From NCBI GenBank assembly GCA_964304625.1, contig OZ199838.1, positions 5,996,443 through 6,060,442 of the forward strand: a DNA stretch of 64,000 bases, given 5' to 3'. The position numbers and the translations under genes were made by a program. Shown here in pieces: positions 33,762 through 61,276 of the stretch. Under the pieces are notes generated by a model that was not told where the DNA came from, did not search any database, and saw only the letters and a program-made list of their open reading frames with translations. This stretch comes from Kudoa neothunni. Its lineage: Eukaryota; Animalia; Cnidaria. Position 1 is the first letter of the stretch, and every line of letters begins with the position of its first letter.

Positions 33762-35994
33762 ATGTGTTTATTTTTTAGACTGTTATCACTTATTGTGATG
33801 GTTACCATAAAATTATCGTCTTGTCGTGATATCAACGTACTCTACCCAACATCGACAGATCTCCTCTCAATTGAGAACAATACACTAATACTCACTTTTG
33901 ATATCAATTATGAGATGATGGTCGTGTTGTTTAATAGTAGTGTAGTTCCCGAGAGTGTTGCTTTTACTAAAAAATCGATATCAAATGCAGACGAGCCTTG
34001 CGGTAGCATTTTTTCTATAAGCGAGGTGAAATGTGTACAAAATTCGGTGGGTGAAGGTGCCAAACGGCAGACTCATCTAATCAACTTCACGTTACCATCT
34101 CATATTAACGATGCGAATACCGAAGATCAGATTAGACTGTATATATGTGCGAAATATTTCACTACTGATTCAAAACCTGGTGTGCGCAGTAAAGAATGGA
34201 GATATCAAGGCGCTGATTTTTATGTGATAGCCATAAGACCTACCTATCACCTACCATTGATAGCTAGTGTGCTAATTGCGATGGCGCTGCTGATTCTGTC
34301 TGGGTTATTTTCTGGTCTTAACATTGGTCTTATGTCGTTACAATTGAACGAATTGGAGGTTATTTCCAACACCGGAACCCCTACTGAACAGTTGTACGCC
34401 CGAAATATTATCCCCTTGAGAAAACTTGGTAACATACTTCTGGTGTGCATACTTTTGAGCAATACCGCGGTCAACAGCACCCTAACTATTATTATCGATA
34501 AAATATCAACTGGTGCTATCGCGGTTGTTTCATCCACATTATGTATTATGCTTATCGGTGAAATTATTCCACAAAGCATTTGCACCAGATATTCGCTTGC
34601 TATTGGATCCAATACCAGATATATTATGTGGTTGTTTATTGCATTGACAAGTGTTTTGAGCTTTCCATTGGGATATTTGCTCAATTGTGTGTTGGGACCT
34701 GAACCGCCTACAGTAGTTGGTAGGAAACAACTTCTTGAACTAATACGTGTTCACGGTAAAGATGCCAACCTTGACAACGAAGAAGTAGGAATAATATCTG
34801 GTGCATTGAATTTCCGGAGCAAAGTTGTTGCAGATGCTATGGTGCCGATTGATAAATGTTTTCTACTGAGTGAAGATGCTATTTTGGATTTCGAAACCAT
34901 CACTCGAATAGTACAATGTGGTTTCAGTAGGATACCAGTGTATTCGAAAACACGCAGCAATGTGGTCGGTTTATTGCTTATGAAGGATCTCACATTGGTG
35001 GATCCTGATGACAAGATCCCGCTGACCACAGTTATCAATTTCTACAAAAGAACCATTATCAAAGTGTTTCCTGACATTACATTGGACAAGCTGTTTCATG
35101 AATTCAAAATTGGAGTTGGGCATCTTGCTGTTGTAATCGAAGTAAAAACCGGTGACAACGGTGATCCGTACTACAACTCTGTTGGTATTATCACTCTGGA
35201 AGATATAATTGAAGAGATTATCCAAAGTGAAATAACTGATGAGACTGATTTCTATAATGAGAAAATGATCTCCAACCAACAAAAATCCAACGCTGATGCC
35301 AACAACAAACTTATGCCATTCTTCCATCAAGAATCTACTGCCGCCCCCGAACTGTCTCCTAATATGGTATTGACTATCTGTCAATTTCTATCCACAGGTA
35401 TGTGTGTGAAGTTCTGTCTTTGGTGATTGATTATCTGGATATGTAGCTATACCTGATTTTGCTGAAGAGCATATCTCCAGAACAACCCTTAAAGTACTGG
35501 TCACCAGACTTGATGTTGTATATAGCTACGAAAATATTGACCTTGAACAACCTATCTACTTGTATAAACATGGCGTTTTAAGTGATTGTTTCACACTCAT
35601 ACTCGAAGGTTGTGTATTTGTGACGAATACGGGTGTTTTGATTTTTTGTATATTAGGAAAGGTTGAAGTTACTGTAGGTCAAGAAAAGATTCTTAGTGTG
35701 CATGGACCATTTTCTTATTTTGGTACACCTGTACTAAGAGGTTCGTCCACTCAAAGCATCACCTCAAAGATGAGACGCTCCACAAACTTCTGCCCCGATT
35801 ATTCGGTCAAGGTTATCACAAATGTGCTTTGTCTGCGAATTAAAAGTTCGCTCTACTTGGACACTCTGAGAACTGCCGGAGATGTATCTTTTGTAGCGTG
35901 ATCTTAGTCTCACTATTTTGAACATTTTTAGAAGGATGCTGACTCCAAATTTTCCACAGTTCCGTCTCAAAATTCGTTGAATAATACTCAATAA
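33762..35994 (+). CDS. CNNM/ACDP divalent metal (Mg2+) transporter; introns at about 35398-35447, 35609-35656 and 35884-35931
   Basis: Signal peptide, extracellular domain and DUF21 (SGLFSGLNIGLMSL, GEIIPQSIC). A CBS pair follows (GFSRIPVY, GIITLEDIIEEIIQSEITDETD), then a CNBH-like tail (FTLILEG, GPFSYFG, PDYSVK). Confidence 0.93.
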
Positions 35995-37430: not shown

Positions 37431-39635
37431 CAAAATTGTAATTAGATAATTATATTAACACTCTTATTATAGTGGAGGAAATTTTTATTCTTGAAGTGTC
37501 TCAGAATTTAAAAAGAGCTTCCCGATTACGTTCTTAATTTTATTTAAATTTAATTCATTACATTAATACATTAGTATAATTTCGGCTGTTAAATCAATAT
37601 GGATATTTAAGTTTGTTTTGTTGACTTATAGGGTAAGGACCTTATCGCAACTTATTAGACTGTGGAATTTATTGGTGATCAGTTCATCAATTTGGACGTT
37701 GTAAGCAACGTAGCAAGTCTCATACAACCTTTCTTTATCCTATTAAGGAACTATTGGGGTTTAACTCACTATAAATTTTCGTTTTAGGTGAATGTAATCT
37801 TAAATCCTACCATCTTGACCCTTTCATGCTCAAAATAATTTCTACCATCCAGTAACATCAAATTACAGGAAAAAATCAAAAATAAGTTAAAATCCTACTC
37901 GTATGTACCATAACAACGAAAAGTTTCACATTGATTTTAAAATGCATTGAAAATTAATTTTTGATTTGATTTATAAACAAAATAAATTAATAAAGTTAAT
38001 ATGTATACATCGATAAATTTTTGATGTATGCACGCCAATTTAGATATCAACTTCTCATTTTCAAAACTATTCCATATCGCAAAATATTTAAAGGTGAAGC
38101 TTATAAAAATAAGCATAATAGATTGAATTTTAGTATATATTTTTTCTTGTTATTAATAATTATATAATAATGGTTTATTAGATAATTTATAACAATAATT
38201 CATTTAAAACTTTCTTTAATTAATCTCCTAATTTTTTAAATATATGTAAGAATATTTTTAAACAATGACAAATTATGTTTTAAGAAAAATCGTATGTGGA
38301 ATTTCTTTTGATTATGCATAAAAATAGATTACATTTTTAAAAATGACGTTTAAAATTTTTGGAAGGGTATTTTTTAGGATGTGACTATTAACACGGTAAA
38401 TAATATTCAAGTGACACTAATTAAATATGGCAGATTCTATGAAATGAAATTTATGAACAACTTGTAAGTAGGAGTTGCTGAGATTAAAAATTCTCAATGT
38501 CCAAGCATACACGCCGTTTAGGATTAAATTTTACCGTGCCAATAGCCTCTGTCATATTTTAATGCAATTAATTTAAAAAAATATTTTCTTCTAATAAAGA
38601 AATCAACATTAAAGCGTTAAAAACTGAAAATAAAATGAAAATGTAAACTCTAATAATCCTTTTAAAATGTCTGAGGATATTAAAGTTTATTTTTGTTGGT
38701 GATGGTCAAAATTTATCTAAATTTCAGCCTGCTGTAAAAATAATAAACAATTTTTTGAATTTTAATCTTACGTGTAGTTTTTTACCTTTTTAATAAGATC
38801 CTTTATTTTTTGACCATATAATTAATTGGCATATTATTTTAAAAATATTTAGTTATCAAATAAAAAGTATTCCTATAGCAATCTGTTAGCGATTCTAATT
38901 ATAATCAAATAGTTCAATGTCACTTTTGTTTCGTCGCTATCTCTTTATTCGTAAATAATTAATTATGATTTTGTAATGCATAAATTTAAAAAAATAAAAT
39001 ATTATACTTTGAGAATATTATATGCATATATTGCTAAATTATTTATAACCACGTGAATGTGATGTGATTAGAAATAACACTCGTGGGGAATTAATTATGA
39101 TTTGAAATATAAACCACAACCTTGTATAGTGATGGATTTTAGAATCTCAGTAGTGTAATTATATTTGGAATATAAAATTTTGATAACTTAATTTATTCTT
39201 GCATATTATAGTTATTTCTGTATATGCTAAGTCTATACAATATACGACGTTTTATCCGGAGGTATTATTCTATAATGAATTGCTTCGTATATTCGGATGT
39301 AACAATTCATTATTAATTTATAACTATGGCTTATAATTTTCACAGCTTTTGGTAGATCTTAATTTCCAACGTCTTTTATCTTTATTTACGGCTGTTTTTT
39401 GGAAAAGTTTATACATATATACATTAAGATTCGGTATTTACGTTTATTTGCTAAATCTTTTTATATCTTTAACTATTTATTTTAATCTTTAAAGAGTTTT
39501 TACTTTGTATATATTTAAGATAAATAATAAATTATCTAAACTTTGAATTATTTGTTTTTCTATTCACTTCGATATTAATATCTACTTTCGCTAATCCTTA
39601 TTGAATTCATTACTTACAGCGTTCGATCCAAAACC

Positions 39636-41650
39636 ATGATTGTCGCATTTATATTTCTCACGTTATTCTATAGGGGTAATATTTTGTGACACGGAGATGT
39701 CTAATTAGTCATATAGTTCAACTCCACAGATATCACATCATAAGAAATAACGATTTGCAAAACAATGTCATCCACTTGACTCTAGAAGGAAATCCCAACC
39801 ATCAATGTCACATCAAATTATTCACGCAATCTGAAGATCATTATTATTATAAAGATGTGAGTTGTGGTAATAAAAGGATCTGTGAGGTTCCTTGCAACGG
39901 AGAGTACACTATTTCTACCGATACTATTGCTCCTCACCACTATTTGCAAATAGCTTCTAAAGCCAAGACAGACTACCTCAAAGTTGCTCACAGTAGATTT
40001 GCGATGAGTTAAGTACTTGGTTTAATTTTCTGTAGGCACCTCATCCATACCTTTCTCCAAATATTTCTTTGATAGTACGACTGTGTCGTTTGTCAATAAA
40101 CACTTATGTAGGGATTCGTCCAAACCTGTTTGTTATATAAGATCCGGTCAGTTTGTTGTTTCGAGTTACTCCCACGATTCGCATCCTGAATGTGGCGGCG
40201 AGTACATTCTAAGCTCATACTATAATATTTACAATAAACCTCTCGAGCTCTTTTGTGGTCCTCATTATCCCAAAATTTTCTTCGATAAGAATCTGCTATT
40301 AAACAACAAACAAAACCTACTAAACCGATACCCTGTGAGAATTTCTACAAATACAACTAGTACAAAAATAGACATCAAATTTGATGAGCCTATTCTTGAC
40401 ACTATTTGCAGATTTGAAATAGCCAAAAAAGATGGTTCACTCAGTTCTAAATGCGAGGTAACTACCGATGCAGATAACTGTTATCAATCATGTCAAAATG
40501 TTACTATGGAACTAGAACATACACCTGCGAGTGATAAAATAATGAAAGTTAAAATATCTACCAGAGACAAAACAATTCAGCCTCTACTAATGTCAAGTAA
40601 TTTTAATATTATAATAATTTTTACTGATTTAAATTAGCCGATAAGAAGGATATTGACATAACAGAAATTACGAGGTCATCAGCCATTGTTAAGGTTTCTG
40701 CACTACATGATAGCACTGCCCAATGCAAGGTGAGATTGTTTTTTCAAGAAAATTATGTGAAAGTAGAAGCCAATCGTGTTGGATTAGAGAGTCGAACTAG
40801 CTTTGGCTCATGCCAGCCTGATATAAAATTAGTTTCACTTATTGCTGATACAAAGTATGTTGTAAGTGTGCAGTACAAAGCCCAATCTTCTGACTCTGAC
40901 TCTGACATAATACACATAAATAAAATGTTTCAAACTCGTATGACAAAGAATTCTGATTAGAATGTTATAATATTTTTAATAGCTAAATTGGATGCTTTTA
41001 CTCCGGATTATACGATTTATCCTCATAATGTTGTCATCAATCCGCAACCCATATGGATAGAAGATTATCAAGCAGAATGCATGATTATGCAAAAACTAGG
41101 AACTACAGGAGAATTCATTGGATCGACATGTGAGGAATCCTTAAACTGTTTGGGTTTGTGCAGCTCAGTATTTACCGTGACAAGTTTGAAACCAGGAACA
41201 GATTACACATTTAAAGTTGTTCCTTTAAGTTTATATGCGGTCTCAGATACTTTAACCAAAATTGTCCAAACAAGTATAACCTAAATATTAATAACATTTA
41301 TATTATTTTTAGTGTCCGAGTTTATAAAAGTAAACGTTCAGTACAAATGGACAGACAATAATTTAGAAATATCAACTGAAGTAAAGGTTAAAACGGATGG
41401 AATATGTGACCTTATGTTTGTGGATAAATCCGTAGAAAATGAGGTTAAAATACTCGCAGTTTATGACGAAAAAAATGATTGGAATGAATCATGCAACACT
41501 ATAATAACATTCTTTGATGTTCCTGAATACAAATCGGCTACTGTGATCGTAAAATCAAGATATAGAGGAGAACCAACAGAGTTAAACCTCTTCGAGTCAC
41601 CTACCACTACTGATACCCCAGATCAAACAACAAAATCAACGGAAGCATAA
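39636..41650 (+). CDS. Gene A copy 1: secreted Cys-rich protein of about six FN3-like modules, no TM; 6 exons, all introns phase 1
   Basis: Signal-peptide exon MIVAFIFLTLFYR, then introns of about 41-45 nt. FN3-like motifs SLIADTKYVVSV and SLKPGTDYTFKV. It ends in a Thr/Pro-rich tail PTTTDTPDQTTKSTEA* with no hydrophobic anchor. Confidence 0.85.
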
Positions 41651-43341
41651 TATATTGACGATATATTATGCGAAAATGATATTTTTTAAGAAATAAGATG
41701 CAAATTAATATTATTCTGAATTTTCAACAAACTTTTTCGAATTATAGTTAAAATTATTTCGTCCAATATTATGTTATAACTTTTGAGAATTTAGGTTTTT
41801 TCCTTGCAAAACTATATAAAAATTATAATATTATGTTATTAGTATGCGAAGTTTATGTATGGACATTATTAGTTTCAATATTACAAACAACTTTAATGAC
41901 CAGTCTATCAGTTTAATGAGATATTTTTTTTGTCACATTAAAGAAACTAAAAAATTTATTACATTAATGTATATGATAGATATAATTATTTTATAACAAC
42001 AATTCCCATAAACGAATAGTTATCAAAGACAGATATAAAACATAGGACTCATACATTATGCAATAAAGTATATTCTGTGAGAATACGTTACTTTTTCCAT
42101 ATTTTATTGGTCAATTCATTAATTACATTATTCTCACCCCAAATAAAATATGATAAATTTTTTGAATAATAAATGAATTATTCAGTGTCAATCATATCTA
42201 ATTTCATCACGATTAATCGCTTCATTAATTATATTTGGGTCTCAAGAGGGATGTTTATGGGTGCAAATAAATAGAGTTTTAAAAACTATGGATATAAATC
42301 TTCAAGTTTATATTAGTTGAAACTATCAATAATTTATAATAACATTAACATAAGGACGAGAAAATTTTAATAAATTATGTGTCAATAATTTTTGAAGACC
42401 TCATTCGTCAACCCTAAAATGGAATAGAAAAGGTTTTGTAGTCATGCTGTAAATATATTATGATTGTAAATTTAGACATGAGAATATTTAATAGATTATT
42501 AATTTACAATTAAAATAAAAATTTATACACAAATAAAAAATGAGAGAGGATTTTGAAAACTGTTGTGCAACTTGTCGATTCATATGCAGCAGATAACTTG
42601 GCTCCTCTTGATAGTACTTCGTTTTCATTTCAATTAATTATGGTATATAACATATAATTCCACTTAACAACTAAAATTCATAGTTTTAATTAGTCAAAAA
42701 ATTTAGTTATCTATTATATAAAAATCTTATATTTGATTAAAATAATTGCATTATAAAAATTGAATTTTCATATAATAAACAGAAAAATTATCATATATAA
42801 TGGAAGATACCACCATTTTCCAGATAATTTTATTATCTAAATAATTCGAATATTTCAACAATAAATGTATAAGATAACGATTTTATTAAGAAAAAAGTAC
42901 TTTAATGAAGTATAAATAAATTACAAGAGCTTAATAATACGTAATGGAATATAACATTTTATTTCAGTTAGTTACAAATTTTATTTGTAACTCATTTTCT
43001 TGAAATAAAACTCATATCGACTTTTACCACGTTAAAATAAAATGGATTAAGAACATAATTACAAATTTATTATGTATGGGTACTTTGATTACGAAACAAA
43101 TAAATTATTGAGCAAAAAATATCAATCTAAAGTAGCAAGCAATTTAGGCTTGATATATACCTAATGTTTTTCTTGTTATCCTTAATGAATGAAAGTAAAA
43201 TTCAGATGAAGGTTTAGATGCTGAATTCAATCGTTTATAATCCATGAATGAAAAGGAACGATTCTCGTGGTATTTCTAATCGTATTTAATCATAAGTTGT
43301 ATTAAATTATTGTATTTATTAAGACAAAATAAACAATAAGG

Positions 43342-45598
43342 ATGATAATAATTACTTTTTTTCTTTTTACGTTGTGTTGCAGAAGTACAATTTGAATTGT
43401 GGAATTTTGTCATATTTTTTAGTTCGTTCGCATAAATACTACGTAGAACGCGACCAATTAAATTCAGAGGATCTAATCCATCTTAAACTTGAAGGAAATT
43501 CAGGAAGAAAATGCGAAATTAGACTATTAGACAAGAATAATCATTTCTACAACTATGTGCATAGTGGTGAAATGGAAAATGATGTTCACACCATTCCTTG
43601 CAATGGAAGATACATCATTTCAACTGGAACTGCCTCTCCTATATACTATGTACAAATAAAATCAAAATCTGAAATTGAGACACTCAAAGTGGTTCATAGT
43701 AAATCGCTTTTTTATGTTTGAATTTAATATTTCATTAGCATTGGATAAGACACCTGAAACTGAATTCAAAGTAAATGCTGACTCGATTGAGTTCACAACA
43801 AAAAATATCTGTAGTCATCCTCAAACTTGCACACTAACCAGTGGAGATAAAATACTTGATAAATTCATCCCCAAAAATGACACTGAATGCAACGCTGAAA
43901 CTAAACTCACTGGGTTCTTCGATTCAGTAAAGGCTGACTCAGTCAAACTATCTTGTGGGAGCAACCAACCAAATATCCACATGTATAAACAAAACAACAA
44001 AATTGTGGAGTTTAATCCAATGGAAAAATATCCCTTCCGTATAAGCAAAAAAAATGCAGAGACCAACAAGATTACAATTACTTTCGACGAAGATATTAGG
44101 GATGAAATTTGCTTGTTTGAAATAAAAAAGAAGAGTGAAAACGGTGATTTTACAAAAAAATGCTCTGTGACTGGCGATGGGGATTGTTATCAACTATGCA
44201 CTGAAGTTACCATGGATCTGACTTTTTCAGATGCAACGGACAAGGACTTTAAAGTAAAAGTATCGACTAGAAATCATTCTGGTGAAGAAAAAACTTTAAG
44301 ACGTAAAATATAATTTGAAATACTTTAAATTTAAAAAAAAATAGTTGGAAAAGGTGACCTTCCAGTCCAACCTAAAGAAACGTCTGCAGCTATCTCTGTT
44401 GGCACTCTAAAAGAAGCTACAGGTATTACAACTTGCACAATTGAAGTGAGGAAACAAGAATACCCAAAGATTACTATTGATGCTAAGTGTGACGCAGAAT
44501 TAAAGAACCCATGCCCAGCGACTTGCCCAGAAACCGCAACTATTTATGGGTTGGAACAAAACACCAAATACATTGTGAAAGTAACCTATGCTGGTGGTAG
44601 TGAATCCTACATTGCAGAGAAACTCTTTACAACAGGTAATAAAAGAACTAAATTATTTACCTCATCCGAATTTAGATAGCTATAACATGACACAAGCACC
44701 GGTGATAACATCGTACTACGAGCACGTAAAAATGACCATAGCGCCAAAAACTACTTTGTTTGACGGGGTTTATTGCAAAATTCTGCAAAAATTGAATGGC
44801 CAAAATGATTTAAGCCCATCTGAATGTGAGGAGTCAATTGACTGCTATGGTTTATGTGGAGAACCGATGACAATCAAAAATCTTTTATCTGATACCGAAT
44901 ATCAATTCAAATATTTTTTCGACAAATACGTTGGTGACTTGCCTAAAAACATAGTGACTGTTAAAACCAGTAAAAATAACTCAAGTATACACGAATAAAA
45001 CTGATTAAGGTGATAAACTCGAAAAACTCAACGTGACATACGCATGGAGAGGTTCCGATTTAATCGTAACAACAAACTTGGAGTCATCAGAAGAAAAACA
45101 TATCTGTGACTTTACATTTGTAGACACTATGGAAGGGGACATAAATTTCGTTTTTGGGATATATGATAAAACCACCGATTGGGATGGCAAATGCAACAAG
45201 GAAGTCACTTTTTACAACGCTCTGTCCTATAAACAAGGATTAATGAAAGTACAAGCAAGATATGTCAGTGAGCCAGTCATAGTTGATTTTTCTGCCCCAA
45301 TAACCCAAGAACAAAAGGATTTGGTTAATCCTGAAACTAATGAACACGGTAAACTTTTTTAATGAGGGTTAGATAATCCAATAATAATTCTGTAGGAACA
45401 TCTGATGGGTAAACTCATATTATATTATTTGATTAGTTTATACTAACTATAATTTAGTGCTTCTACTGGCGGAACTAAAGTTATGTAATTTAATTGGTGT
45501 GATTCAAACATTCAATGTTGTTTAGGCTGGTTGTTGGTGGAGTTATTATAGCCCTGCTTGTGTGTGTCATTGGTTTTATGGTATTCAGGAAGAAATAG
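43342..45598 (+). CDS. Gene B copy 1: type I membrane paralogue of gene A; 9 exons including 13-nt and 27-nt micro-exons
   Basis: Signal peptide MIIITFFLFTLCCR. Same intron positions and motifs as gene A (IHLxLEGN, PCNGxYxIST, ICxFEIxKK, CYQxC, CEESxxCxGLC). C-terminus ...GTKVMLVVGGVIIALLVCVIGFMVFRKK*. Confidence 0.87.
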
Positions 45599-46350
45599 AT
45601 GAGTTCAATTCTTCCATAGATCTTTCTTAAAATGGCGAACACATACAGGAACCGAATACACACTTATTTGTAGTCGTCTGATTATTATTATTATTATTAT
45701 TGTTACTTTTAATTTTGTGAGATGGGATTATTTCAAACATGTTTCATGCTGATTATAGGATATTATTATTTCTTTAATCAGTAAAATTTTGTATTAATCA
45801 AACATGATTTATATCATTAAATATTTAAAATTATTAGACGTCTTTTCTCGGTCTTTATATATAATTTCTCTTAACTCGTTCGACTCGCTCCACCTTAATT
45901 TTTTACATTAACCCTCCAATTATATTGGGGTCAATATGACCCTAGATTTTTATTTGATGAATTTGATAAATTTTTATAATCACAATGGTAAAATATTAAA
46001 AAATTCCGAATGATTGAATTCCGAGTAAAACGATATTAACCCTGGCTGTACGAGGCGAGGTCACTCAGTGACCCCAAAAAGCGTCTTATCTTCATATCTC
46101 CTAAAAAATAATTTTCTCCTCATTTGACCCCGTGAATGCTTCTTTGACGATATGTTTCTCATTTTAAAATAATTTTATATTAAAGTTTTTAAATCGTTTA
46201 TATACCTATATTTCACTACAGATATCAAATTCTAACAGCAATAATCAATGTAATCTAGACGTAAATTTCTGGATTTTCGTTTTTTTTAATTTGTGGTATT
46301 ATTCGTTCTCACTTTATTTTGAGAAGTAATTAACATTCTCTTATCAATAA

Positions 46351-47010
46351 CTAGCGCAAAAGCTCCGCTTCGCATGGGCTTCCTTTCCCGGCTAAGTAGA
46401 CTAAAGCCTTGAGTAGGCCAAGATCATTTGAAGTTCAAAGATTACCCAATTAACGGATGATTTATTTAACTAATTGGACGCATGAACCTTATTTAATATT
46501 TTTAAAAACGAATAAACACTACTGAGCGTTCAAAATTTCCTCTTTAGAGCTCCTAAAAAATTGATTTTCTTCTTGCTGTTTGTGGTAATTTCTAAATCAT
46601 ACCATATGAATTGGACTAATCTTGTTACACATTAACAAATGAGTTTCATATTAATGATTGATTACATAACCTAATATTACCTTCTTTATTTGAACCAATT
46701 CAATTACTAAATTACTTTTCAATAATTTTAAAGTAAAATAAAAACAACGGTATATTTAAAATTAACTTTTAAATCTTTAATGAAATGATCTATATGCTTG
46801 CATAAATCTTCAAATCAAACCAATCATACCACGTGAAAATGTTTTTAGTCATTTTGCAGGATGCAAATCCTTTATAATTTTTTAAGTATTTTTCTGTGTT
46901 AAATAAAATTCTATCTTTCCATATATGTTCTCGAATGGAGTGATATATCGCTCTATAAAGAATGAAAAATGCCTACACACACGGATTACCGGTTTGCTTT
47001 ATATAGTAGA
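46351..47010 (-). mobile_element. Non-autonomous Helitron (3' end shared with the 13926 family)
   Basis: The minus strand begins TCTACTATATAAAG...gtgtgtgt and ends gcccatgcgaagcggagcttttgcgCTAG|T. Confidence 0.72.
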
Positions 47011-48159
47011 CTAGCGGGAATTGCCCGGCGTTGCTTGGGAGTAATAAGCACTGAAAAATTTCTTAATAACATTCAAAAAAGGTATTAATGTTCAAATTGA
47101 CCTATAGATTTAATCAAATTAAAAATTGTTGTTAAACTCATATTTTAACGACTGTGAATATGAAATTTTAATTATTATTTTTTCTGTGAAGGGATGTACC
47201 AATCCCGGCGTTCATTCAAAAATTTTTGGGCTCGACACCAAAACTAAATAATTTAACGTCAATGTCGTATTTAATTTGCATTCCCGAATTATTTAAATTC
47301 CCTTAAGTGCTATGTAAAACGTTATTTTGTGATCCTGGGGTTTTTAAATGTTGAATTCTGGCCTAACAGAAATTTTTTGCACCACAGTTTACGGGAGACA
47401 AATAAATAGAAAAAGATATAGAGCTAAAATAAAACAAAAGAAAATTAATTGTTATTGCTCATAGCAATATCCTTTGGCCCCGAATAAACTTTCATGCGCT
47501 TTTCCCCATAAGCAGCCACAAATCGCGTCAACTTCAACATAAAAAATTTAAATATTTGGTTTAAATAAAAATACAACCATCTGAATTGAATTCAATCACA
47601 GAAAGTTAAACTTAGAGGGTGACTTCAATAAAATCTACGGACATGATGCTTGTATTATAAAGTTTCAATCTAGCTGATTATAGAATTTCTTACTAAATCG
47701 CTATTAATGATGAAAACATACTTTTCCCATATTTTAAACCAATAATAGAACTTTTAAAATATACTTATCAAGTCATATACGTTAAAACTCCACAAATAAG
47801 AAGTGTATATGCAAAAACCCCAAAATATACACGCCAAAATTATATAAAAAGTCCGATAGCGACAGTTAATCAACATTTGATTGAGCATATAAAGGGGAAA
47901 ATTAACTTCAACCAACCATCCGCAGGTCATAATTGGGGTTAATCCTATTGTTGAACCCAAGTAATCCGATAAACAAACTTTGAATTGGCAGAATCACCAT
48001 TTTCTGAACATTTGGTAATGTGAAAACGATTTAAATATTTTGGAAACATTGTGATTTTTTAAAAATTACATATATGTCTCTCTATAAGGAAAAAATTTTG
48101 ACGAGCATGTGTACTTGCTGACACACAAACGGACACTTCAGCTTTATATTTATAGTAGA
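47011..48159 (-). mobile_element. Second non-autonomous Helitron, head-to-tail with the previous one
   Basis: The minus strand begins A|TCTACTATAAATATAAAG...tgtgtgtc and ends cccaagcaacgccgggcaattcccgCTAG, directly abutting the TC of the next element. Confidence 0.72.
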
Positions 48160-48818
48160 TAATACAAAACTCAAAAAATGTAATTTATTGGATTAGTGGA
48201 AAACTTTGTCTATGAAGACAATTTTTTAAGAATGGAAATCAGTATATAATAAACAGTAAGACTTTTGGAACACATGATGAATCTTTAGGAATTAAGTTAC
48301 GGTTTGGTCAAAAAAAGGTAAACTCAACATATGGTATTCTATACTAAAGATTAAGTTGAACCGACTTATTTCGATTTGTGACAATGTAAAAATTTACAAG
48401 TTATTTTTAGGAGTCGAGTTTCTAAGTTTTCGTTTTATTAATTTTCTTAAAATAAATTATGAAAAATTTGGGGAATTATAATGTGCGTAAGAGGGTGTTT
48501 TTTAGTTAACAGCTTTGTCTGTAATTAAAAGGATTAAGATCACGTAAATTATAACTCTGTACCAGTATGATCAACTTTCAAAAGAGTACTATAAATTGAA
48601 TTTTTTGCATAGATTAATATACATCATATTTTATAAAACCCATAAAATTTATATAAATCAAATTGTAATAGCATATTTGCATTTTTTAAGGTAGAAGGTT
48701 AAGGAAGTACTTAAAAGAACCCCTATATTATAGATCAAATGGACTACGTTTAAGATTTGTTGCTTTAAGCCTAAGAATTAAACTATACTTATGCATTGGT
48801 TTATTGTTTTAAATAAAA

Positions 48819-50292
48819 ATGAAAGAAAATGTAAAGTCGATTGTTAGAAATTATTTTTCATAAGTTGATGAAATCAATTCAAAGTGGTGTTGTAAATGTG
48901 GGAAGGAAAGAATTCAAAAAAACGCAGGATGGAAAAATCTTTTTAATCATGTTAAAAGCCAGCACAAAGATTATCTCAAGTCAATTGAAACGCCAACAAT
49001 ATTGAATAATTTTGGGATGGTGCCAGAAGTTACAAAAAAGGGTAGCACCATTTACAGATGTTTAAATTGTGTTTGTTGTACATGTAAACTATTTCATTTT
49101 GTAGAAAATGAATTCACTCGTTTGTATGGCAACCTAGAGACAATTTCAGTCAAAACGTTTAAAAAATATTTCGAATTAGTTACAAAGGAGGTCGGCATAA
49201 AAATAAAAGATCCGTTCCCCCCCCCTCCATTTTAGATGGGTGGACGAAAAATTACACCCATTATATCGGCATTTTTGCTACTTTTAAATCACCAAATTCG
49301 AACGGCTATGAAGTATTTCTTTTAACGTTTTTTCCATTGTTGACAGAGACAACATTTGCAGAAAATGATCATTATGATCTTCTAAAATTTGTTTTGAGTA
49401 TATATGGGAAATCTTTTTCCAATATAATATCAATAAGTGAAGACATTGCTGAAGTTAATAAAGCTTTAGCGAATCTATGTCAAGTCACGTTAATTGGATA
49501 TGCTTCGTATCGTTTAAATTTGGCCGTCTTGAAATTCTTGAAACCCCACGAAAACTTAATTCAAAGAGTGCATAATTTAATGGGAAATTTAAAGAATCTA
49601 AAAAATTCGGGATTGTTGCGAACCTTTACAAACCTAAGGCCGAAACAAAAAAATGAGACCAGATGGTCAAGTACTTCTGAAATGTTTGAAATGTACGAAA
49701 AGTTAAAAGTTTTTTTTCTGACTCTGCTGAAAAAAGTTCGAATGATCATTCGCTATCACCGAGAGAAAATATGAATATATCTTAATTATTAATTCATCTG
49801 AAAAAGTTTAACTCGATTTCATTGATCCTTCAAAAAGAAAGTGTTACGTTGGCTGAAACGCGATATTTGTTTGATGAACTTATCCTCATATACTCCTGCT
49901 TGGATGAATCACTTGGTGCCAACGCCAAAATCATTCACCCTCCAACTTTTGAAAAAGCGATATATAAAATTCAGGAGGAAAGGTTGGATGAGATGACTTA
50001 TGAGGAACAAAATGAAGTTTGGGATTTGAAAATAAATACATCCAATCCCACGGAAGAAATTGAATCTTTAACTATATGTGATGATTTTTCCCTTAACGTA
50101 TTAAGAAAAAGGAAGATGGAGAAAAAATTTATTCCTACCTGCTATATGGATACTAGATTCATCCTTCTAACCTCTAATATTGATGAGCGCTTTTTCAGCA
50201 ATGCTGGCTACGTCTCTAACGACTCTAGTCAAAGTTCATTGTATTCAAATTTAGAAATGAAAATTTTTTTAAAGGCAAACCGTAAACTGTGA
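48819..50292 (+). pseudogene. Decayed hAT transposase with BED-type zinc finger
   Basis: WCCKCGKERIQKNAGWKNLFNHVKSQH, DGWT, YASYRLNLAV (CxxH-derived), TRWSST and TSNIDERFFS are spread over frameshifted ORFs. Confidence 0.85.
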
Positions 50293-51641
50293 AACGAAAA
50301 ACTTGTTTCCAAAATTGTTTCTTCGAACTCAAGTATATAATTTTAATTTTATTTTCGATTTGCCACTGCGAACTTTTTAGATTCCTCGCTAAGCCCAGAC
50401 ATTATGCTTAGAAATAAAAACTAAAACAAAACAACCACAGGACTAATAATAAAGTTTTTATGCGATCCCACCGAGAATAAATTGGAGTAGATTATGCCAC
50501 ACACGCCATAATAAAATTAACAGTATTATACCGTGCTTATGAATATGCTATAGTTAATTCGGATAATTTTAGAAGAACGATCAAATTACTTTTCTTCTAA
50601 CAGCTATAACACAAACTCTACTTTAAAAAATTTTTTTTGGTTATTTTTATATTTGTCCTCTTTTATTTTTTTCGCTATAAGTAACAATAGATTAATATAT
50701 CTTTTATTAATGCGAGTCTATCTCAGATATTCTTTTATCGCATTTAGGAAGATAGCTAAATCGCAGTTTACTATTAATAATTCATATTTTGTTATAATAT
50801 ATTGATAAAAGAAATATTTTGATATTGAAATTAAAAACGCATAAGTAATTAACTTATTCTTTTGTGATAATTTTTTAGAATAATTTTCACAACTATTTAT
50901 ACCTTATTTGGATTTTTCATTACTGTTTAATGGCGCTTAAAAATTTATTATTAATTGGAAAATAAGCAAAATCATTTTCAAGCGTGGAATGCAAGATGAT
51001 TAGTCGTAATATAAATAATTTTTTATATAATGAAATAATTATTAAATGAAAATTCATTAAATTATTTTGTTATTAGACCATTAAAAAATTTTTTAGATAA
51101 ATTTCAATTAATTGAAATAATTGATTGTGACAAATCGAAAAAAATCAATTATTTCCAGGCCCTGCTTAAAATGTGAAATTTTGATGACTCAACTAATTTA
51201 TTATTGCATATTATATTTATTTGTATATAAACCAAGGTTATACAATTTACGATATTTTATTCGGAGGTATTATCCTATAATGAATAGCTTCGCACATTCA
51301 GATGTAACAATTTATTATTCATTTATAATTACGGCTGACACATTTTCACTGCTTTAGGTACAGTTTAATTTTAAATTTCAGTTATCTTTATTTGAGAATG
51401 TTTTTTTAAAAAATGTACCCTTATATACTGTATGATTCGGTATTCATGTTTATTTGCTAAATCTTTTTATATCTTTAACTATTTATTTTAATCTTTAAAG
51501 AGTTTTTACTTTGTATATATTTAAGATAAATAATAAATTATCTAAACTTTGAATTATTTGTTTTTCTATTCACTTCGATATTAATATCTACTTTCGCTAA
51601 TCCTTATTGAATTCATTACTTACAGCGTTCGATCCAAAACC

Positions 51642-53651
51642 ATGATTGTCGCATTTATATTTCTCACGTTATTCTATAGGGGTAATATTTTGTGACACGG
51701 AGATGTCTAATTAGTCATATAGTTCAACTCCACAGATATCACATCATAAGAAATAACGATTTGCAAAACAATGTCATCCACTTGACTCTAGAAGGAAATC
51801 CCAACCATCAATGTCACATCAAATTATTCACGAAATCTGAAGATCATTATTATTATAAAGATGTGAGTTGTCATAATAAAAGGATCTGTGAGGTTCCTTG
51901 CAACGGAGAGTACACTATTTCTACCGATACTATTGCTCCTCACCACTATTTGCAAATAGCTTCTAAAGCCAAGACAGACTACCTCAAAGTTGCTCACAGT
52001 AGATTTGCGATGAGTTAAGTACTTGGTTTAATTTTCTGTAGGCACCTCATCCATACCTTTCTCCAAATATTTCTTTGATAGTACGACTGTGTCGTTTGTC
52101 AATAAACACTTATGTAGGGATTCGTCCAAACCTGTTTGTTATATAAGATCCGGCCAGTTTGTTGTTTCGAGTTACTCCCACGATTCGCATCCTGAATGTG
52201 GCGGTGAGTACATTCTAAGCTCATACTATAATATTTACAACAAACCCCTTGAACTCTTTTGTGGCCCACACTATCCCAAAATTTTCTTCGATAAGAATCT
52301 GCTACTAAACAACAAACAAAACCTACTAAACCGATACCCTGTGCGAATTTCTACAAATACAACTAATACAAAAATAGACATCAAATTTGATGAACCTATT
52401 CTAGATACTATTTGCAGATTCGAAATTGCCAAAAAAGATGATTCACTCAGTTCTAAATGTGAAGTGAATACCGATGCAGATAACTGTTATCAATCATGTC
52501 AAAATGTTACTATGGAACTGACTCATACATCTACAAGTGATAAAATAGTGAAAGTTAAAATATCTGCCAGAGATACGACAACTCAGCCTTTAATGATGGC
52601 AAGTAATTTTAAGATTCTAATAACTTTTTCTGAATTTTTATTAGCCGATAAAAACGATATTGAAATAGCATCAATTACTAAATCTTCAGCCACTCTCAAG
52701 GTTTCTACATTCTATACCGCCAATGCCCAATGCAAGGTACAATTGTTTTTTCAAGAAAATTATGTGGAAGTAGAAGCAAAACGTGTAGGATTAGAGGGTC
52801 GAACTAGCTTTAGTTCATGCCAGACTGATATAAAATTAGTTTCACTTATTGCAGATACAAAATATGTTGTAAGTGTGCAGTACAAAGCCCAATCTACTGA
52901 CACTGACATAATACACATAAATAAAATGTTTCAAACTCGTATGACAAAGAATTCTGATTAGAATGTTATAATATTTTTAATAGCTAAATTGGATGCTTTT
53001 ACTCCGGATTATACGATTTATCCTCATAATGTTGTCATCAATCCGCAACCCATATGGATAGAAGATTATCAAGCAGAATGCATGATTATGCAAAAACTAG
53101 GAACTACAGGAGAATTCATTGGATCGACATGTGAGGAATCCTTAAACTGTTTGGGTTTGTGCAGCTCAGTATTTACCGTGACAAGTTTGAAACCAGGAAC
53201 AGATTACACATTTAAAGTTGTTCCTTTAAGTTTATATGCGGTCTCAGATACTTTAACCAAAATTGTCCAAACAAGTATAACCTAAATATTAATAACATTT
53301 ATATTATTTTTAGTGTCCGAGTTTATAAAAGTAAACGTTCAGTACAAATGGACAGACAATAATTTAGAAATATCAACTGAAGTAAAGGTTAAAACGGATG
53401 GAATATGTGACCTTATGTTTGTGGATAAATCCGTAGAAAATGAGGTTAAAATACTCGCAGTTTATGACGAAAAAAATGATTGGAATGAATCATGCAACAC
53501 TATAATAACATTCTTTGATGTTCCTGAATACAAATCGGCTACTGTGATCGTAAAACCAAGATATAGAGGAGAACCAACAGAGTTAAACCTCTTCGAGTCA
53601 CCTACCACTACTGATACCCCAGATCAAACAACAAAATCAACGGAAGCATAA
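51642..53651 (+). CDS. Gene A copy 2: secreted Cys-rich FN3-like repeat protein
   Basis: Same exon structure as 39636-41650 and an intact frame. Confidence 0.85.
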
Positions 53652-54644
53652 TATATTGACGATATATTATGCGAAAATGATATTTTTTTAGAAATAAGAT
53701 GCAAATTAATATTATTCTGAATTTTCAACAAATTTTTTCGAATTATAGTTAAAATTATTTCGTCCAATATTATGTTATGACTTTTGAGAATTTAGGTTTT
53801 TTCCTTGCAAAACTATATAAAAATTATAATATTATGTTATTAGTATGCGAAGTTTATGTATGGAAATTTTTTATTTTCAACATTACAAACAACTTTAATG
53901 ACCAGTCTATCAGTTTAATGAGATATATTTTTTGTCACATTAAAGAAATTAAAAAATTTACTACATTAATTTATATGAAAGACGTAAATATTTTATAATA
54001 ATAATAATTCCCATAAACTTATAACTATTAAACACATATTTAAAAAATGGGACTCAGTATTAAATAAAATATACACTGTAAGAATGCATTACTTTTTTCA
54101 TATTTTATTGGTAAATTAATCACATTTTTATTCTCACTATCGAAATAAATTTTAATATTTTTTTTAAATATGTCGTTTATTGAGATTTAATTTAGCTTAT
54201 TGATTTAGTGGTAATCATATCATACATAATGATTAGTTTCTACATTAATTATTTTGTGAGCCTTAAAAGAGATATTTATATGAAAAGTTATTTTTAAAAC
54301 TATAAGGATAAATGTTTAAGCTTATAAGGATTTAAATTTAAAGATTTTTAAAAATAAACATGAGGAACAAATAAATTGTGATATATTAAATTTCTATGAT
54401 TTTGGAAGACTTTATTTGTCATCCCTAAGATCGATTAACAAGGATTTTGTAGTTATGCTGCAAGTGTATTATTATTATTGTTAGCATCGACGTGAAAATA
54501 ACAGATAAACTTTTAGATTACAATAAAATGTACAATTTTTTAAACTAAATAATGAGATAGAATTTTGAAAATTGTTGTGTAAATTAACTCGTGAGAAGCA
54601 GATAACTTTTTTCTTTTTGATAGTACTTCGTTTTCATTTGAATT

Positions 54645-56075
54645 GTATTCTTAACGGCATGACGAATTTTTATATGTACATGATAAAAAAAGTCAAAAAA
54701 CCAACTATCGAGATGTAAGGTAAGAACATGTAAGTGGCGAATAAAAACAAATAATTCAAGTGATATGATTTTCATACAAGAGTCAGGATTACATAATCAC
54801 GTTACGTCAGAAACGGGTATTGAAAATATTAAGCTTAATTTTAAAATTAAGGAAATTACACAGTCGACACAATATTCTACCCGAAAAGTTTTTACCTTGG
54901 TTACAGTAAATGAAAATCTAAATAATTAACAAACAAAAAAAATATTTATAAAAAATACAAAATGAAAGAAAAAGGGGGAATATTACAATATCGAATATTT
55001 TAAATCTTTGTGAAAACCATGTAAGTACGTTAAGAGGTGAAAAATTCTGCTTTTATGACTCTAACCCGAGTGATAGTCAGCGAATTGTAATTTTTACAAC
55101 AAAGGAGAACATTGAACATTTCAATGATTCAATGGTGATGGTAACAGATGGAACTTTTGATGTCGTTCCTAAAGAGTTTTTACAGCTCTACGCCCTTAAT
55201 GGAAGTATCATAGATAATTTTTCCCTCTGGTTTTTGTTTTAATGAAAATAAAAAATCTAGAATCTTTCAATACATTAATGAACATATTAAGTAATCAAAT
55301 TAATATAAAAATTCCACATAGTATAATTATGGATTTTGAATATGCATCTTTTTGTGCTTTTAAAAATGCATCAAAATTTTCAACCATCTATTTTTGTACT
55401 TTTCATTTAGAACAGTGTGTTTGGAAGAAAGCGCAAAAATTTATGACAACAATTTACAAAAATAATGTGGAATTTAGACTTTTAATTAAATCTCTTACTT
55501 CGTTGGCATTCGTTCCTGAGGAGAATATTTTAAAAGAATATGAAAAATTGAAGATAGAACCTAGGAAAGTAACTGAAATATCATTAAGGCTATTTATAGA
55601 TTATTTCAGAAAAAAATTTCCTATATGGAGGTAAGTATCCTATACCGGCTTGGAACTCGTACAAAAGAGTAATGGAAAATTTACCCTCAGCCTCGAACAA
55701 TGCGGGAAACTTTCATAAATGTTTTAAAGCATTATTCGAACAGTCGCATTTAGGACTGAATAATTTGGTGTAAAAGCTGCAAGAATATCAGCGACAACGA
55801 GAAAGAAATAGAAGGTCTAATGTCTAATCCATTGAATAATTCCACCACGAATAAAACCCATGACAAAATGAAAAAAATAAAAGTGGTGTGCGAAAATTAT
55901 AAGCGCTACTACGGATTATTTTATGTTAAGACATTAGCCAACCTGTATAATTGGTGTATCAATCAGAATATTTATTTTACGTAATTATGTTAGTTTGCCA
56001 CAAAAAATTGTTTTTTCTGTTATTCCAACCTATCATGGTCAACAAGGAACGTTCGGCAAAATTTCTCCTCACGGT
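54645..56075 (+). mobile_element. Decayed MULE (Mutator-like) transposon present only in duplication copy 2
   Basis: Motifs DGTFDVVPKEFLQLY, FPLVFVLM, IIMDFE, CTFHLEQCVWKK and SLAFVP. The flanks join seamlessly in copy 1 near 42635-42645. Ends are approximate. Confidence 0.85.
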
Positions 56076-56870
56076 TCATAACATATAATTCCACTTAACA
56101 ACTAAAATTCATAGTTTTGATAGTCAAAAAATTAAGTTGAAAATTTTAACGATCTCGGTTACAAAATTTTCCATTTACTGAAAAGTTATTCATGTAAACT
56201 TTAGATATCTATTATATAAAAATCTGAGATCTGATTAAAGTACTTGCATTATAAAAATTGTATTTTTATATAATAAACAGAAAAATTATCGTATATAATG
56301 GAAGATACCACCTTTTTCCTAATAATTTAATTATATAAATAATTAAATTTTGAAAATTTCCTTAATAAATCTATGAAATATTTACTTTATTAAGCTTACA
56401 AATACTTAAATGAAGTATATAAAAATTACAAGAGATTAAAATAATTAAAGGAATATAATTTTTTATTTCAATCGGTTGCAAATAAATTAAATGATTCATC
56501 TTATTTTATTAAAACTTACATTAGTTTGTTTCACGTTAAAATAATATGAATTAGGAACATATTTAAAAATTTATTATATTTGGATACTTTAATTATTAAA
56601 AAAATAATTTATTGAGCAAGAAATATCAATTTTAAGTAGCAAGAAATTTAGGCTTGGTATATACCTAATGTTTTTCGTTTTATCTCTAATGAATTAAGGA
56701 AAATTTAGACGGAGGTTTAGGTGCTTAATTCATTACTATTTAATTAGTTATGAATTCAATCGTTTATAATCCATGAATGAAAAGGAACGATTCCCGTGGT
56801 ATTTCTAATCGTATTTAATCATAAGTTGTATTAAATTATTGTATTTATTAAGACAAAATAAACAATAAGG

Positions 56871-59127
56871 ATGATAATAATTACTTTTTTATTTTTTACA
56901 CTGTGTTGCAGAAGTACAATTTGAATTGTGGATTTTAGTCACATTTTTTAGTTCGCTCGCATAAATACTACGTGGAACGCGACCAATTAAATTCAGAGGA
57001 TCTAATCCATCTTAAACTTGAAGGAAATTCAGGAAGGAAATGCGAAATTAGACTATTAGACAAGAATAATCATTTCTACAACTATGTGCATAGTGGTGAA
57101 ATGGAAAATGATGTTCACACCATTCCTTGCAATGGAAGATACATCATTTCAACTGGAACTGCCTCTCCTATATACTATGTACAAATAAAATCAAAATCTG
57201 AAATTGAGACACTCAAAGTGGTTCATAGTAAATCGCTTTTTTATGTTTGAATTTAATATTTCATTAGCATTGGATAAGACACCTGAAACTGAATTCAAAG
57301 TAAATGCTGACTCGATTGAGTTCACAACCAAAAATATCTGTAGTCATCCTCAAACTTGCACACTAACCAGTGGAGATAAAATACTTGATAAATTCATCCC
57401 CAAAAATGACACTGAATGCAACGCTGAAACTAAACTCACAGGGTTCTTCGATTCAGTAAAGGCTGACTCAGTCAAACTATCTTGTGGGAGCAACCAACCA
57501 AATATCCACATGTATAAACAAAACAACAAAATTGTGGAGTTTAATCCATTGGAAAAATATCCCTATCGCATAAGCAAAAAAGGCACTGATAACAACAAGA
57601 TTACAATTACTTTCGACGAAGATATTCCAGATGAAATTTGCTTGTTTGAAATAAAAAAAAAGAGTGCAAGCGGTGACTTTACAAAAAGATGCTCTGTTCC
57701 TAGCGAAGGGGATTGTTATCAATTATGCGCTGAAGTTACCATGGATCTTGAAAATGTTAGTGGAACAGATAAAGACTTTAAAGTAAAAGTATCGACTAGA
57801 AATCATTCTGGTGAAGAAAAAACTTTAAGACGTAAAATATAATTTGAAATACTTTAAATTTAAAAAAAAATAGTTGGAAAAGGTGACCTTCCAGTCCAAC
57901 CTAAAGAAACGTCTGCAGCTATCTCTGTTGGCACTCTAAAAGAAGCTACAGGTATTACAACTTGCACAATTGAAGTGAGGAAACAAGAATACCCAAAGAT
58001 CACTATTGATGCTAAGTGTGACGCAGAATTAAAGAACCCATGCCCAGCGACTTGCCCAGAAACCGCAACTATTTATGGGTTGGAACAAAACACCAAATAC
58101 ATTGTGAAAGTAACCTATGCTGGTGGTAGTGAATCCTACATTGCAGAGAAACTCTTTACAACAGGTAATAAAAGAACTAAATTATTTACCTCATCCGAAT
58201 TTAGATAGCTATAACATGACACAAGCACCGGTGATAACATCGTACTACGAGCACGTAAAAATGACCATAGCGCCAAAAACTACTTTGTTTGACGGGGTTT
58301 ATTGCAAAATTCTGCAAAAATTGAATGGCCAAAATGATTTCAGCCCATCTGAATGTGAGGAGTCAATTGACTGCTATAGTTTATGTGGAGAACCGATGAC
58401 AATCAAAAATCTTTTATCTGATACCGAATATCAATTCAAATATTTTTTCGACAAATACGTTGGTGACTTGCCTAAAAACATAGTGACTGTTAAAACCAGT
58501 AAAAATAACTCAAGTATACACGAATAAAACTGATTAAGGTGATAAACTCGAAAAACTCAACGTGACATACGCATGGAGAGGTTCCGATTTAATCGTAACA
58601 ACAAACTTGGAGTCATCAGAAGAAAAACATATCTGTGACTTTACATTTGTAGACACTATGGAAGGGGACATAAATTTCGTTTTTGGGATATATGATAAAA
58701 CCACCGATTGGGATGGCAAATGCAACAAGGAAGTCACTTTTTACAACGCTCTGTCCTATAAACAAGGATTAATGAAAGTACAAGCAAGATATGTCAGTGA
58801 GCCAGTCATAGTTGATTTTTCTGCCCCAATAACCCAAGAACAAAAGGATTTGGTTAATCCTGAAACTAATGAACACGGTAAACTTTTTTAATGAGGGTTA
58901 GATAATCCAATAATAATTCTGTAGGAACATCTGATGGGTAAACTCATATTATATTATTTGATTAGTTTATACTAACTATAATTTAGTGCTTCTACTGGCG
59001 GAACTAAAGTTATGTAATTTAATTGGTGTGATTCAAACATTCAATGTTGTTTAGGCTGGTTGTTGGTGGAGTTATTATAGCCCTGCTTGTGTGTGTCATT
59101 GGTTTTATGGTATTCAGGAAGAAATAG
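56871..59127 (+). CDS. Gene B copy 2: type I membrane Cys-rich FN3-like repeat protein
   Basis: Same exon structure as 43342-45598, an intact frame and an identical TM/RKK tail. Confidence 0.87.
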
Positions 59128-61276
59128 ATGAGTTCAATTCTTCCATAGATCTTTCTTAAAATGGCGAACACATACAGGAACCGAATACACACTTATTTGT
59201 AGTCGTCTGATTATTATTATTATTATTGTTACTTTTAATTTTGTGAGATGGGATTATTTCAAACATGTTTCATGCTGATTATAGGATATTATTATTTCTT
59301 TAATCAGTAAAATTTTGTATTAATCAAACATGATTTATATCATCAAATACTAAAAATTATTAGACGTCTTTTCTCGGTCTTTGATTCGTAATTGCTCTGA
59401 TATTGCACGACTTCAACTCAATTTTTTGTATTAAATTATTTTTAAATAACAATTTTGTAATAAAATAATGTTAGTTTTTAAAGATGTTTAGTAATTTATT
59501 TTAATTAATTTGATTAAAATATTTTTTTATTTGTAAATAATTGTTGACCTTATAAAACATTGAGTTATCAAAAAACAGGGTGAGATATTAAATTTTAATA
59601 ATTATTCAGCTTAATTATGATCGATAAAAATTATAACGAATACTTTAATTATTTTTCATTAGTCGAACAGCATTAAATCATTTATTAGCCCAAAAAACAA
59701 GAAATATTATACCGTACAATATCGATTTTACATAATTTCACTTCTTTGTTTGCAAATACATAAATAATGAATTCAAAACTATTTTGATAGTTATGAGAGA
59801 TTGATTATACACAATTGTTATTAAAAGGAAGTGGCTATTGACACGGATCATAATATCCAGGTAGGTATAGTTTTGACCGCATTTAATTATTTTTGGACCC
59901 AAGAAGCGGTAGCGAAGGGCCAAAAACAATTAAATACCACAGATTCTAAAAAATAAGCTTTATTGGTCAACTATAAATAGGAGTTACCGGATTAAAACTT
60001 GCGTGTCAATTGCCAGTGCCCTATTAAAAATTACAAAAATATGTATTTTCGACATTATGTTATTTTTTGGCTACCATCTTAATATTTAAACATTTTTATT
60101 TTAATTACTTATATTTCTGATAATTCCAAAACTTATTTCAATATATAATAATGTCTATTATTATATACTTTTCAATAATTTGGCAAAGAAGCTACTTAAA
60201 CTAATTCTGTTACTATTCACCAATTTAATATTCTTTATACTTAAACTTTGTAGAACGTCTATAGTAAGATAAAATAATTAACTTATCCATTTAAAACAAG
60301 GCTGGCTTAATCCACACAATCTAACAAATAATGAAATCGATAAATTAATCAAAAAATGATTTTAATGTTATGTCCTATGATTTATCATATTAATTAAAAG
60401 CTAGTAAACATATTTTTATAAAAGATAATATAATCATACACAAAAAATGAGGAACGGAGTCCACATGAATCAATTCGTGACTTTTGGGTGATTCCGACTA
60501 TAAAATAGCCCTTTAATGTAAGAACGATCCTTTTAGGCATTCACAACTCTTACCAACTCTGGATCTTCAAAATGAGTGCTATTGTTAAGGGATATTATTA
60601 TAATTTTTTGTCCAATTTAGACAAAACTGCGTTATTTTGGAATTAAACCACGGTAAATTTATTCATATAATAAACATGGATTTTTTAAGATAAAATTCGT
60701 TCCATATCCTGATTTTAAATAACATCTACATAAAATCTCCCAAACTAATTTTTTATGCGTATTAATATGTCTATCTTTTTATTAATCATCTAAAGAAGAA
60801 TAATATAAGATTTTAAAAACATGAAAAATAAGCGTATTTAATTATAGTCAAATAATTAAGCGTAAAGGAGATGCTGAATTATTTAGAGGATATTTTTTAA
60901 AATAATTATTTGAAAAAAATATAAATATACTTTGGGGGTGTTAAAACCACCATATAATTAAATTATATATCACTCCTATATTTTTCATAAAGTTAAACGT
61001 GTTATTTATAACCTCTCAATCAACGGAAAACTATCCTTTAAATCTCAAATAACAATATCCTTTACGCCAATAAAAGTAAATTGAACACAGGGAATAATTA
61101 GACGCGCGAGAAAATAAGCTGGCGACTTCGTTAGGAGCACATATGGACCCCAACCAATACCATAAAAGTTAAAATCGTCTGTATGAAATAAAAAGATGAA
61201 ATGCTAACAAAATATCATCGAAAATGAAACCTACTAAGACTAGGCGAAAAGCTAATTAACATGAATGTTAACACAC

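Follow-up and report, generated by a model that had tools for sequence, protein, structure and literature searches.

A recurring pair of predicted secreted and membrane-anchored genes in Kudoa neothunni, with tandem copies apparently homogenised outside one module

We analysed a stretch of 64,000 nucleotides from the genome of Kudoa neothunni (NCBI GenBank assembly GCA_964304625.1, contig OZ199838.1, positions 5,996,443 to 6,060,442 of the forward strand; hereafter the window, in whose coordinates features are given), which carries four related genes in the order A, B, A′ and B′. These are probably two tandem copies of a conserved head-to-tail pair from a myxozoan-restricted extracellular family, in which B is anchored in the membrane and A is secreted, and in which gene conversion has spared a single module, module 3. 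The original prediction for this DNA had supposed a parasite as its source, and rightly so, the organism being a myxozoan, which fits Kudoa neothunni.

Two tandem copies of an A–B gene pair

Comparison of the window with itself by BLAST returned two long collinear repeats and none other, 39169-42635 matching 51170-54644 (89.7% identity) and 42698-45871 matching 56196-59398 (94.1%), which together form a unit of 6.7 kb recurring after about 12 kb. As delimited by this comparison and by the identity profile, the first copy of the unit (39169..45871, + strand) comprises gene A, a spacer and gene B, and the second (51170..59398, + strand) comprises A′, a spacer with a 1.55-kb insertion, and B′.

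Gene models were built by joining exons at GT-AG sites and are predictions from sequence; under these models, all four genes have open reading frames. Gene A (+ strand) has six exons (39636-39675, 39717-39992, 40036-40596, 40638-40937, 40983-41273 and 41313-41650) and encodes 601 aa. Gene B (+ strand) has nine exons in total and encodes 639 aa: exons 1-6 (43342-43384, 43423-43698, 43739-44302, 44345-44635, 44676-44969 and 45010-45348) are followed by two microexons (45396-45408 and 45458-45484) and a transmembrane (TM) exon (45526-45598). Both partners are intact in the second copy, also on the + strand, with A′ (51642-53651) encoding 599 aa at 94.0% protein identity to A, and B′ (56871-59127; microexons 58925-58937 and 58987-59013, TM exon 59055-59127) encoding 639 aa at 96.4% protein identity to B. 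The sole frame-relevant indel between A and A′ is a single base pair at 40627, and because it lies within intron 3 the frame is unbroken.

In both A and B, the first exon encodes a signal peptide (13 aa in A, 14 aa in B) and is followed by five module exons. Introns 1-5 occupy homologous positions in the two genes, all in phase 1 and 38-45 nt long, and the proteins are 34% identical. They contain 20 (A) and 23 (B) cysteines, with an even count in every module exon (2, 4 or 8). The C-terminus of A is a short Thr/Pro-rich tail followed by the stop codon; we found no TM-like or hydrophobic segment in A and no hidden TM exon in either A–B spacer. A is thus predicted to be soluble and should be released from the cell, and its tail is probably O-glycosylated. 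B has one strong TM segment, then RKK, then the stop codon, and is a predicted type I membrane protein without a signalling tail, for which display or binding would be possible; since the TM helix ends in a three-residue basic stub, B should be unable to signal alone. These models bear out the original picture of two only distantly similar paralogues with shared intron positions and phases, one ending after a Thr/Pro stalk and the other continuing into a TM helix with an RKK tail and no signalling domain. They also agree with it in giving four intact frames, and the two collinear repeats, together with the matching A and B trees described below, show the pair to be duplicated as a unit.

Comparison with 14 B-type and 7 A-type genes of 50-70% identity supports the models. 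Introns 2-5 are GT-AG introns of 38-47 nt in phase 1 at 82 of the 84 positions checked, and at the other two (one each in two B-type genes) no clean GT-AG intron was found by script. A hydrophobic first exon, with the same lengths as above, opens every gene compared. Eight B-type genes retain both microexons of B, with their splice sites, and the TM exon. The donor that gives the TM frame is conserved, whereas a second donor, which would lead to another tail, is not conserved. The TM exon is present in all 20 B-type loci, where it ends in KK, KKK or RKK, and a Thr-rich tail followed by a stop closes all A-type genes, including the 7 others besides those of the window. The ratio of nonsynonymous to synonymous differences per site (pN/pS) lies within 0.10-0.47 for all exons of the A-type and B-type genes, as measured between distant paralogues with synonymous sites near saturation. 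By these comparisons, A-type and B-type genes are coding genes under purifying selection.

About 90 nt past the A-type stop in five genes of a chromosome 2 cluster, we also observed a conserved hydrophobic open frame with a basic end, which may have arisen by chance, the DNA being AT-rich, or may be a cryptic TM exon. No comparable hydrophobic frame follows A or A′ in the window.

Mosaic identity of the two copies

A and A′, like B and B′, are close to 100% identical over most of the gene length, including introns and about 200 nt upstream. Identity falls to 72-92% in module 3, encoded by the second half of exon 3, of both A and B, as well as in exon 4 of A, and the A–B spacers of the two copies are 45-80% identical. 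The variable patch of A (40168..40916, + strand; counterpart in A′ 52174-52917) spans module 3 and module 4 (exon 4) and is 88% identical between the copies, against 99.4-99.5% in its flanks, whereas that of B (43961..44310, + strand; counterpart in B′ 57490-57839) spans module 3 and is 89.7% identical, against 99.8% in its 3′ flank. As many as 89 of the 94 differences between A and A′ fall within 40158-40903, and 41 of the 55 between B and B′ within 43884-44245. The copies share identical runs of 653 and 749 nt, lengths reached in 0 of 20,000 simulations (P < 5e-5). Synonymous divergence (dS) at the exon level is 0.17-0.25 in exon 3 and in exon 4 of A (0.25 for the A patch) and about 0 in the others, except in the short exon 1 of B. 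For module 3 alone it is 0.30-0.34, with a dS of 0.34 and a nonsynonymous divergence (dN) of 0.12 in B.

Elsewhere in the genome, on chromosomes 2 and 3, three independent copy pairs carry the same module-3 patch. Compared with the predicted secondary structure, the replacements between B and B′ lie mostly in loops that surround the conserved cysteines clustered in module 3. Import of the patches from a third paralogue was ruled out, since those of the two copies are each other's closest kin among the fetched A-type and B-type loci (88-90% identity, vs 68-73% for the next paralogue).

The simplest reading of this profile is that the two copies stem from an old duplication, and that their gene bodies would have been repeatedly homogenised by gene conversion that spared module 3. 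The copies had first been described as a duplicated unit; the identity profile points to conversion mosaics with an unconverted module and not to simple diverged duplicates, and the locus would then show cleanly how gene conversion can pass over one module.

Recurrence of the pair across the genome

The assembly that we searched consists of three contigs of 17.15, 12.04 and 11.05 Mb and one of 18.2 kb (about 40 Mb in all). B exon 3 has matches at 139 or more places in this genome, and exon 5 at 86 or more. What had been put forward as an A-B-A′-B′ system is therefore no one-off but one locus of a recurring A–B unit, within a family of at least 139 loci. The exon-2 head module has 33 matches, and since nearly all of them are A-type or B-type, A and B form a subfamily with a head module of its own. 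The only exceptions are three weak matches (E about 1e-5) on chromosome 1 at 11.83-11.86 Mb. These distant heads (29-35% identity; chromosome 1:11828538-11864206) adjoin exon-3-like exons and may represent the nearest outgroup of the A/B subfamily.

An intact A-type gene stands immediately upstream at 6-7 of the 18 other B-type loci; remnants of A are left at 5, and 6 lack A altogether. The further intact pairs are spread over all three chromosomes, with A upstream and on the same strand in all of them. For copy number and A–B linkage, both raised by the original prediction, the genome-wide search gives 139 or more loci and 6-7 further intact linked pairs. The remnants, which lie upstream of intact B-type genes at five loci on chromosomes 1, 2 and 3, are lone exons or exons with stops, and on this count the putative secreted partner is the one that decays more often. 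In a tree of exons 2, 5 and 6, A-types and B-types are reciprocally monophyletic (Shimodaira–Hasegawa-like approximate likelihood ratio test, SH-aLRT, 100) and their sub-clades match. From this match it follows that A and B diverged before any of the pair's copies arose, and that the pair has been copied repeatedly as a unit.

Two A–B units on chromosome 2 (8195018-8204018 and 8179430-8188430) lie 15.6 kb from each other and show 100% identity for 4.8 kb or more. Their identity stops abruptly inside the A-type exon 2, so that one A is 5′-truncated, and the second unit arose either by very recent duplication or in the assembly. Counted by eye, exon-3-like loci are densest at the ends of chromosome 3 (first 0.5 Mb and last 0.6 Mb), with smaller clusters near the right ends of chromosomes 1 and 2.

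Predicted fold of the modules

Fold predictions cover exons 2 and 3 singly. Modelled with AlphaFold on the basis of 31 family sequences, B exon 3 is predicted to form two beta-sandwiches (mean predicted local distance difference test score, pLDDT, 77). The second of these (module 2 of the exon) aligns with FN3 domains over 76-82 residues (Z 7.0-8.0, root-mean-square deviation 2.3-2.9 Å), and the first (module 1 of the exon) with an immunoglobulin (Ig)-like domain (Z 7.0). Exon 2 is likewise predicted to form an Ig/FN3-like sandwich (pLDDT 80, Z 6.3-7.7). Eight cysteines of exon 3 are invariant across the 31 family members, including A, A′, B and B′. We therefore picture the modules as disulfide-stapled Ig/FN3-like beta-sandwiches, mostly one per phase-1 exon, as the models predict.

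At the level of sequence, the best scores of Pfam fn3 (PF00041) were 13.2-17.5 bits, all of them in exon 4 or 5 and short of the 25-bit cut-off, and searches of Pfam with ten exons and 31 exon-3 homologues gave only sub-threshold or scattered matches. Of the six Cys-rich FN3-like modules originally proposed, exons 2-3 are thus predicted to have a likeness to Ig/FN3 folds of a generic kind (Z 6.3-8.0), while Pfam scores stay below threshold, and 'FN3-like', being a label drawn from predicted models, is one of fold and not of family membership. A feature search of the ESM Atlas with B exon 3 returned best scores of 0.78-0.80, in the chance range. The CUB domain (PF00431) was considered and rejected, as none of the 31 family members matches it, the hhalign probability is 33%, and module 1 of the exon aligns to an Ig-like domain.

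Relatives in other genomes

When 1.84 billion representative proteins were searched with an exon-3 profile, 28 matched. Most of these (22 of 28) are fragments of 101-398 aa that keep the module-3 Cys signature; those we looked up come from ENA and Logan contigs and are nameless, and the three relative contigs that we fetched are AT-rich, with products 22-34% identical to A or B in a local tblastn with the spliced proteins. The remaining six, in which matches are weak and recur along the sequence, are long repeat proteins; three are cubilin-like proteins of starfish with CUB repeats, and of the three others, the one looked up is an unnamed metagenome protein. Along the starfish proteins, exon-3 module 1 matches weakly as many as 20 times, in the latter half of CUB repeats and with a shared C...CG..P pattern, a likeness that is probably convergence or very remote kinship.

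The family is also present in other AT-rich, presumably myxozoan genomes at 22-34% identity, and appears to be lineage-restricted and undescribed, without named relatives. This agrees with the initial impression of a lineage-specific family that could not be recognised, given that 28 matches in 1.84 billion proteins carry no informative name apart from the weak CUB repeats. Our literature search found no paper describing the family in Kudoa or other myxozoans; other surface-variation families have been proposed in the myxozoan Sphaerospora molnari (bioRxiv 10.64898/2026.02.11.705288).

Surroundings of the locus

The window is AT-rich (about 30% GC) and contains no N bases, and the locus lies in the interior of its chromosome among housekeeping genes. 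The spacer between the two units (45872..51169) has no self-match and is not duplicated. The insertion private to the A′–B′ spacer (54645..56195), seen as a gap in the alignment of the units, contains an open reading frame (ORF) at 55242-55634. By eye only, this ORF and others in the inter-unit spacer (48841-50292, including 49337-50292) resemble fragments of hAT- or MULE-type transposases; Pfam gave no match to the spacer and insertion ORFs at E<=0.01. Upstream of the locus, a long single-exon gene at 33741-35426 (+ strand) encodes a CNNM-type metal transporter. Its best named relatives are from Hydra, Clytia, Myxobolus and Thelohanellus, and its top match (58%) is an unnamed sequence from a Logan contig.

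The family in the K. neothunni gene set

Myxozoans have among the smallest gene sets of any animals, and with about 5,300 genes predicted for this species, a family numbering well over a hundred loci would account for a substantial part of the proteome. Kudoa are parasites of fish muscle that spoil the flesh, and one species causes food poisoning, yet we know of no Kudoa surface molecules that have been defined as mediating host contact. A recurring pair of one secreted and one anchored protein with one differing module thus offers candidates for antibodies, diagnostics and binding studies.

The published K. neothunni assembly was recovered from yellowfin tuna data and comprises three chromosome scaffolds and a circular mitochondrion (PMC12239612). 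Its annotation lists 5,316 proteins predicted from protein hints with almost no parasite RNA, and classes 45.6% of the assembly as repeats (PMC12239612). Because the annotation relied on protein hints and so much of the assembly is classed as repeats, the family may be under-annotated in the published gene set. In the first 10 kb of the 18.2-kb contig, we found no tRNA genes, no Rfam matches, and only two long ORFs under code 11, which is how a myxozoan mitochondrial genome should look when the wrong code is applied.

What the pair may do

If the window does hold two copies of an anchored and a secreted partner in which conversion has spared module 3, as we think probable, then module 3 would set the specificity of each copy, and A would act with B at the parasite surface. 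B might hold A there, or A might compete with B for the same ligand, and the target could be either host tissue or other parasite cells. A complex prediction covering only exon 3 of A and exon 3 of B, run without controls, gave a score of 0.00, which counts neither for nor against binding.

Several points weigh against this account. B is found without an adjacent A at 6 loci and with a decayed A at 5, and so needs no neighbouring A. For module 3, a ratio of 0.2-0.9 does not demonstrate positive selection, and the patch could persist merely because diverged sequence blocks conversion. The fold matches, too, are of the kind for which a Z under 8 is in the generic range.

That the genes encode variant surface antigens for immune evasion, an extension of the original idea of a surface coat with a shed soluble partner, seems to us unlikely. 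In such a system, B-type proteins would form the coat exposed to the fish host, only one or a few family members would be expressed at once, module 3 would serve as the variable epitope and A as a shed antibody decoy. It would suit the number and placement of the loci (at least 139, in clusters on all chromosomes and densest at both ends of chromosome 3), the tiny cytoplasmic stub of B and the persistence of difference in one module while the remainder is homogenised, and surface-variation families have been proposed for another myxozoan (bioRxiv 10.64898/2026.02.11.705288). The ratio for module 3 is nevertheless below 1, the locus of the window sits in a chromosome interior among housekeeping genes, and we noticed no switching machinery. 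Kudoa, moreover, completes most of its development within muscle fibres, a site of limited antibody pressure, which also weighs against such a system.

A role within the parasite itself, in adhesion or matrix, is in our view distinctly unlikely, as so many copies, and a module kept different between neighbours, would be unusual for structural proteins. The proteins would then act in cell-in-cell stages, in contacts between spore valve and capsule cells or at the spore surface, with A as a secreted part of the matrix. Modular Ig/FN3-like ectodomains without signalling tails are indeed typical of adhesion and matrix parts, all modules are under steady purifying selection, and the family has been kept in other AT-rich genomes, presumably those of myxozoans, at an identity of 22-34%.

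A bolder proposal, to which we give only a slim chance, is that A and B are matched through module 3 and make up a combinatorial recognition code, which might serve self/non-self discrimination, recognition of partner cells within the parasite, or a set of host ligands. Conversion would then keep the scaffold uniform, while selection would keep the specificity modules of neighbouring units different. Were this true, a cnidarian parasite would possess a new recognition system.

Finally, it is very improbable that the second copy was produced by misassembly, with an uncollapsed haplotype set in tandem: haplotypic duplication before purging is reported in the source paper (PMC12239612) and long stretches of the two copies are 100% identical, but the spacers have diverged to 45-80% identity, an insertion of 1.55 kb is private to one of the copies, the units are separated by 5.3 kb of unique sequence without any N, the repeat boundaries coincide with those of the gene pair, and other tandem copies show the same mosaic pattern.

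Comparison with known systems

Starfish CUB repeats resemble the Kudoa family in the weak summed profile matches of exon-3 module 1, but the family has no Pfam CUB match and an hhalign probability of 33%, and the predicted module aligns to an Ig-like sandwich. Giardia variant-specific surface proteins (VSPs) also form a large Cys-rich type I family with a short basic cytoplasmic tail (bioRxiv 10.64898/2026.02.11.705288). Unlike them, the Kudoa family has a predicted beta-sandwich fold; its translated models contain no CXXC repeats, and their tails are RKK, KK or KKK in place of CRGKA.

The animal adhesion molecules and cytokine receptors built from FN3 and Ig domains are alike in having mostly one module per phase-1 exon and in their type I topology, and the predicted fold of exons 2 and 3 bears a generic likeness to theirs (Z 6.3-8.0). 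The Kudoa proteins differ from these ectodomains in that fn3 is sub-threshold in every exon, each module has conserved disulfides, a cytoplasmic domain is absent, and the copies, which number well over a hundred, are restricted to one lineage of parasites.

The 6-Cys (s48/45) proteins of Plasmodium, such as P12/P41, P52/P36 and Pfs48/45/Pfs230, are likewise paralogous, Cys-stapled beta-sandwich surface proteins, with one anchored and one soluble member and, in some cases, adjacent genes. In contrast to these apicomplexan proteins, the Kudoa pair has no Pfam match to the s48/45 domain, 2-4 cysteines per module instead of six, and a TM segment in place of a glycosylphosphatidylinositol (GPI) anchor; it comes from an animal, and the partnership of A and B is putative.

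Within the cnidarians, the Alr family of Hydractinia, which we liken to the Kudoa family by description only, has signalling tails and an N-terminal variable domain, both unlike the genes described here. Alr nevertheless parallels the Kudoa family as a lineage-specific, Ig-like type I family of clustered genes, barely detectable by sequence and with one hypervariable domain.

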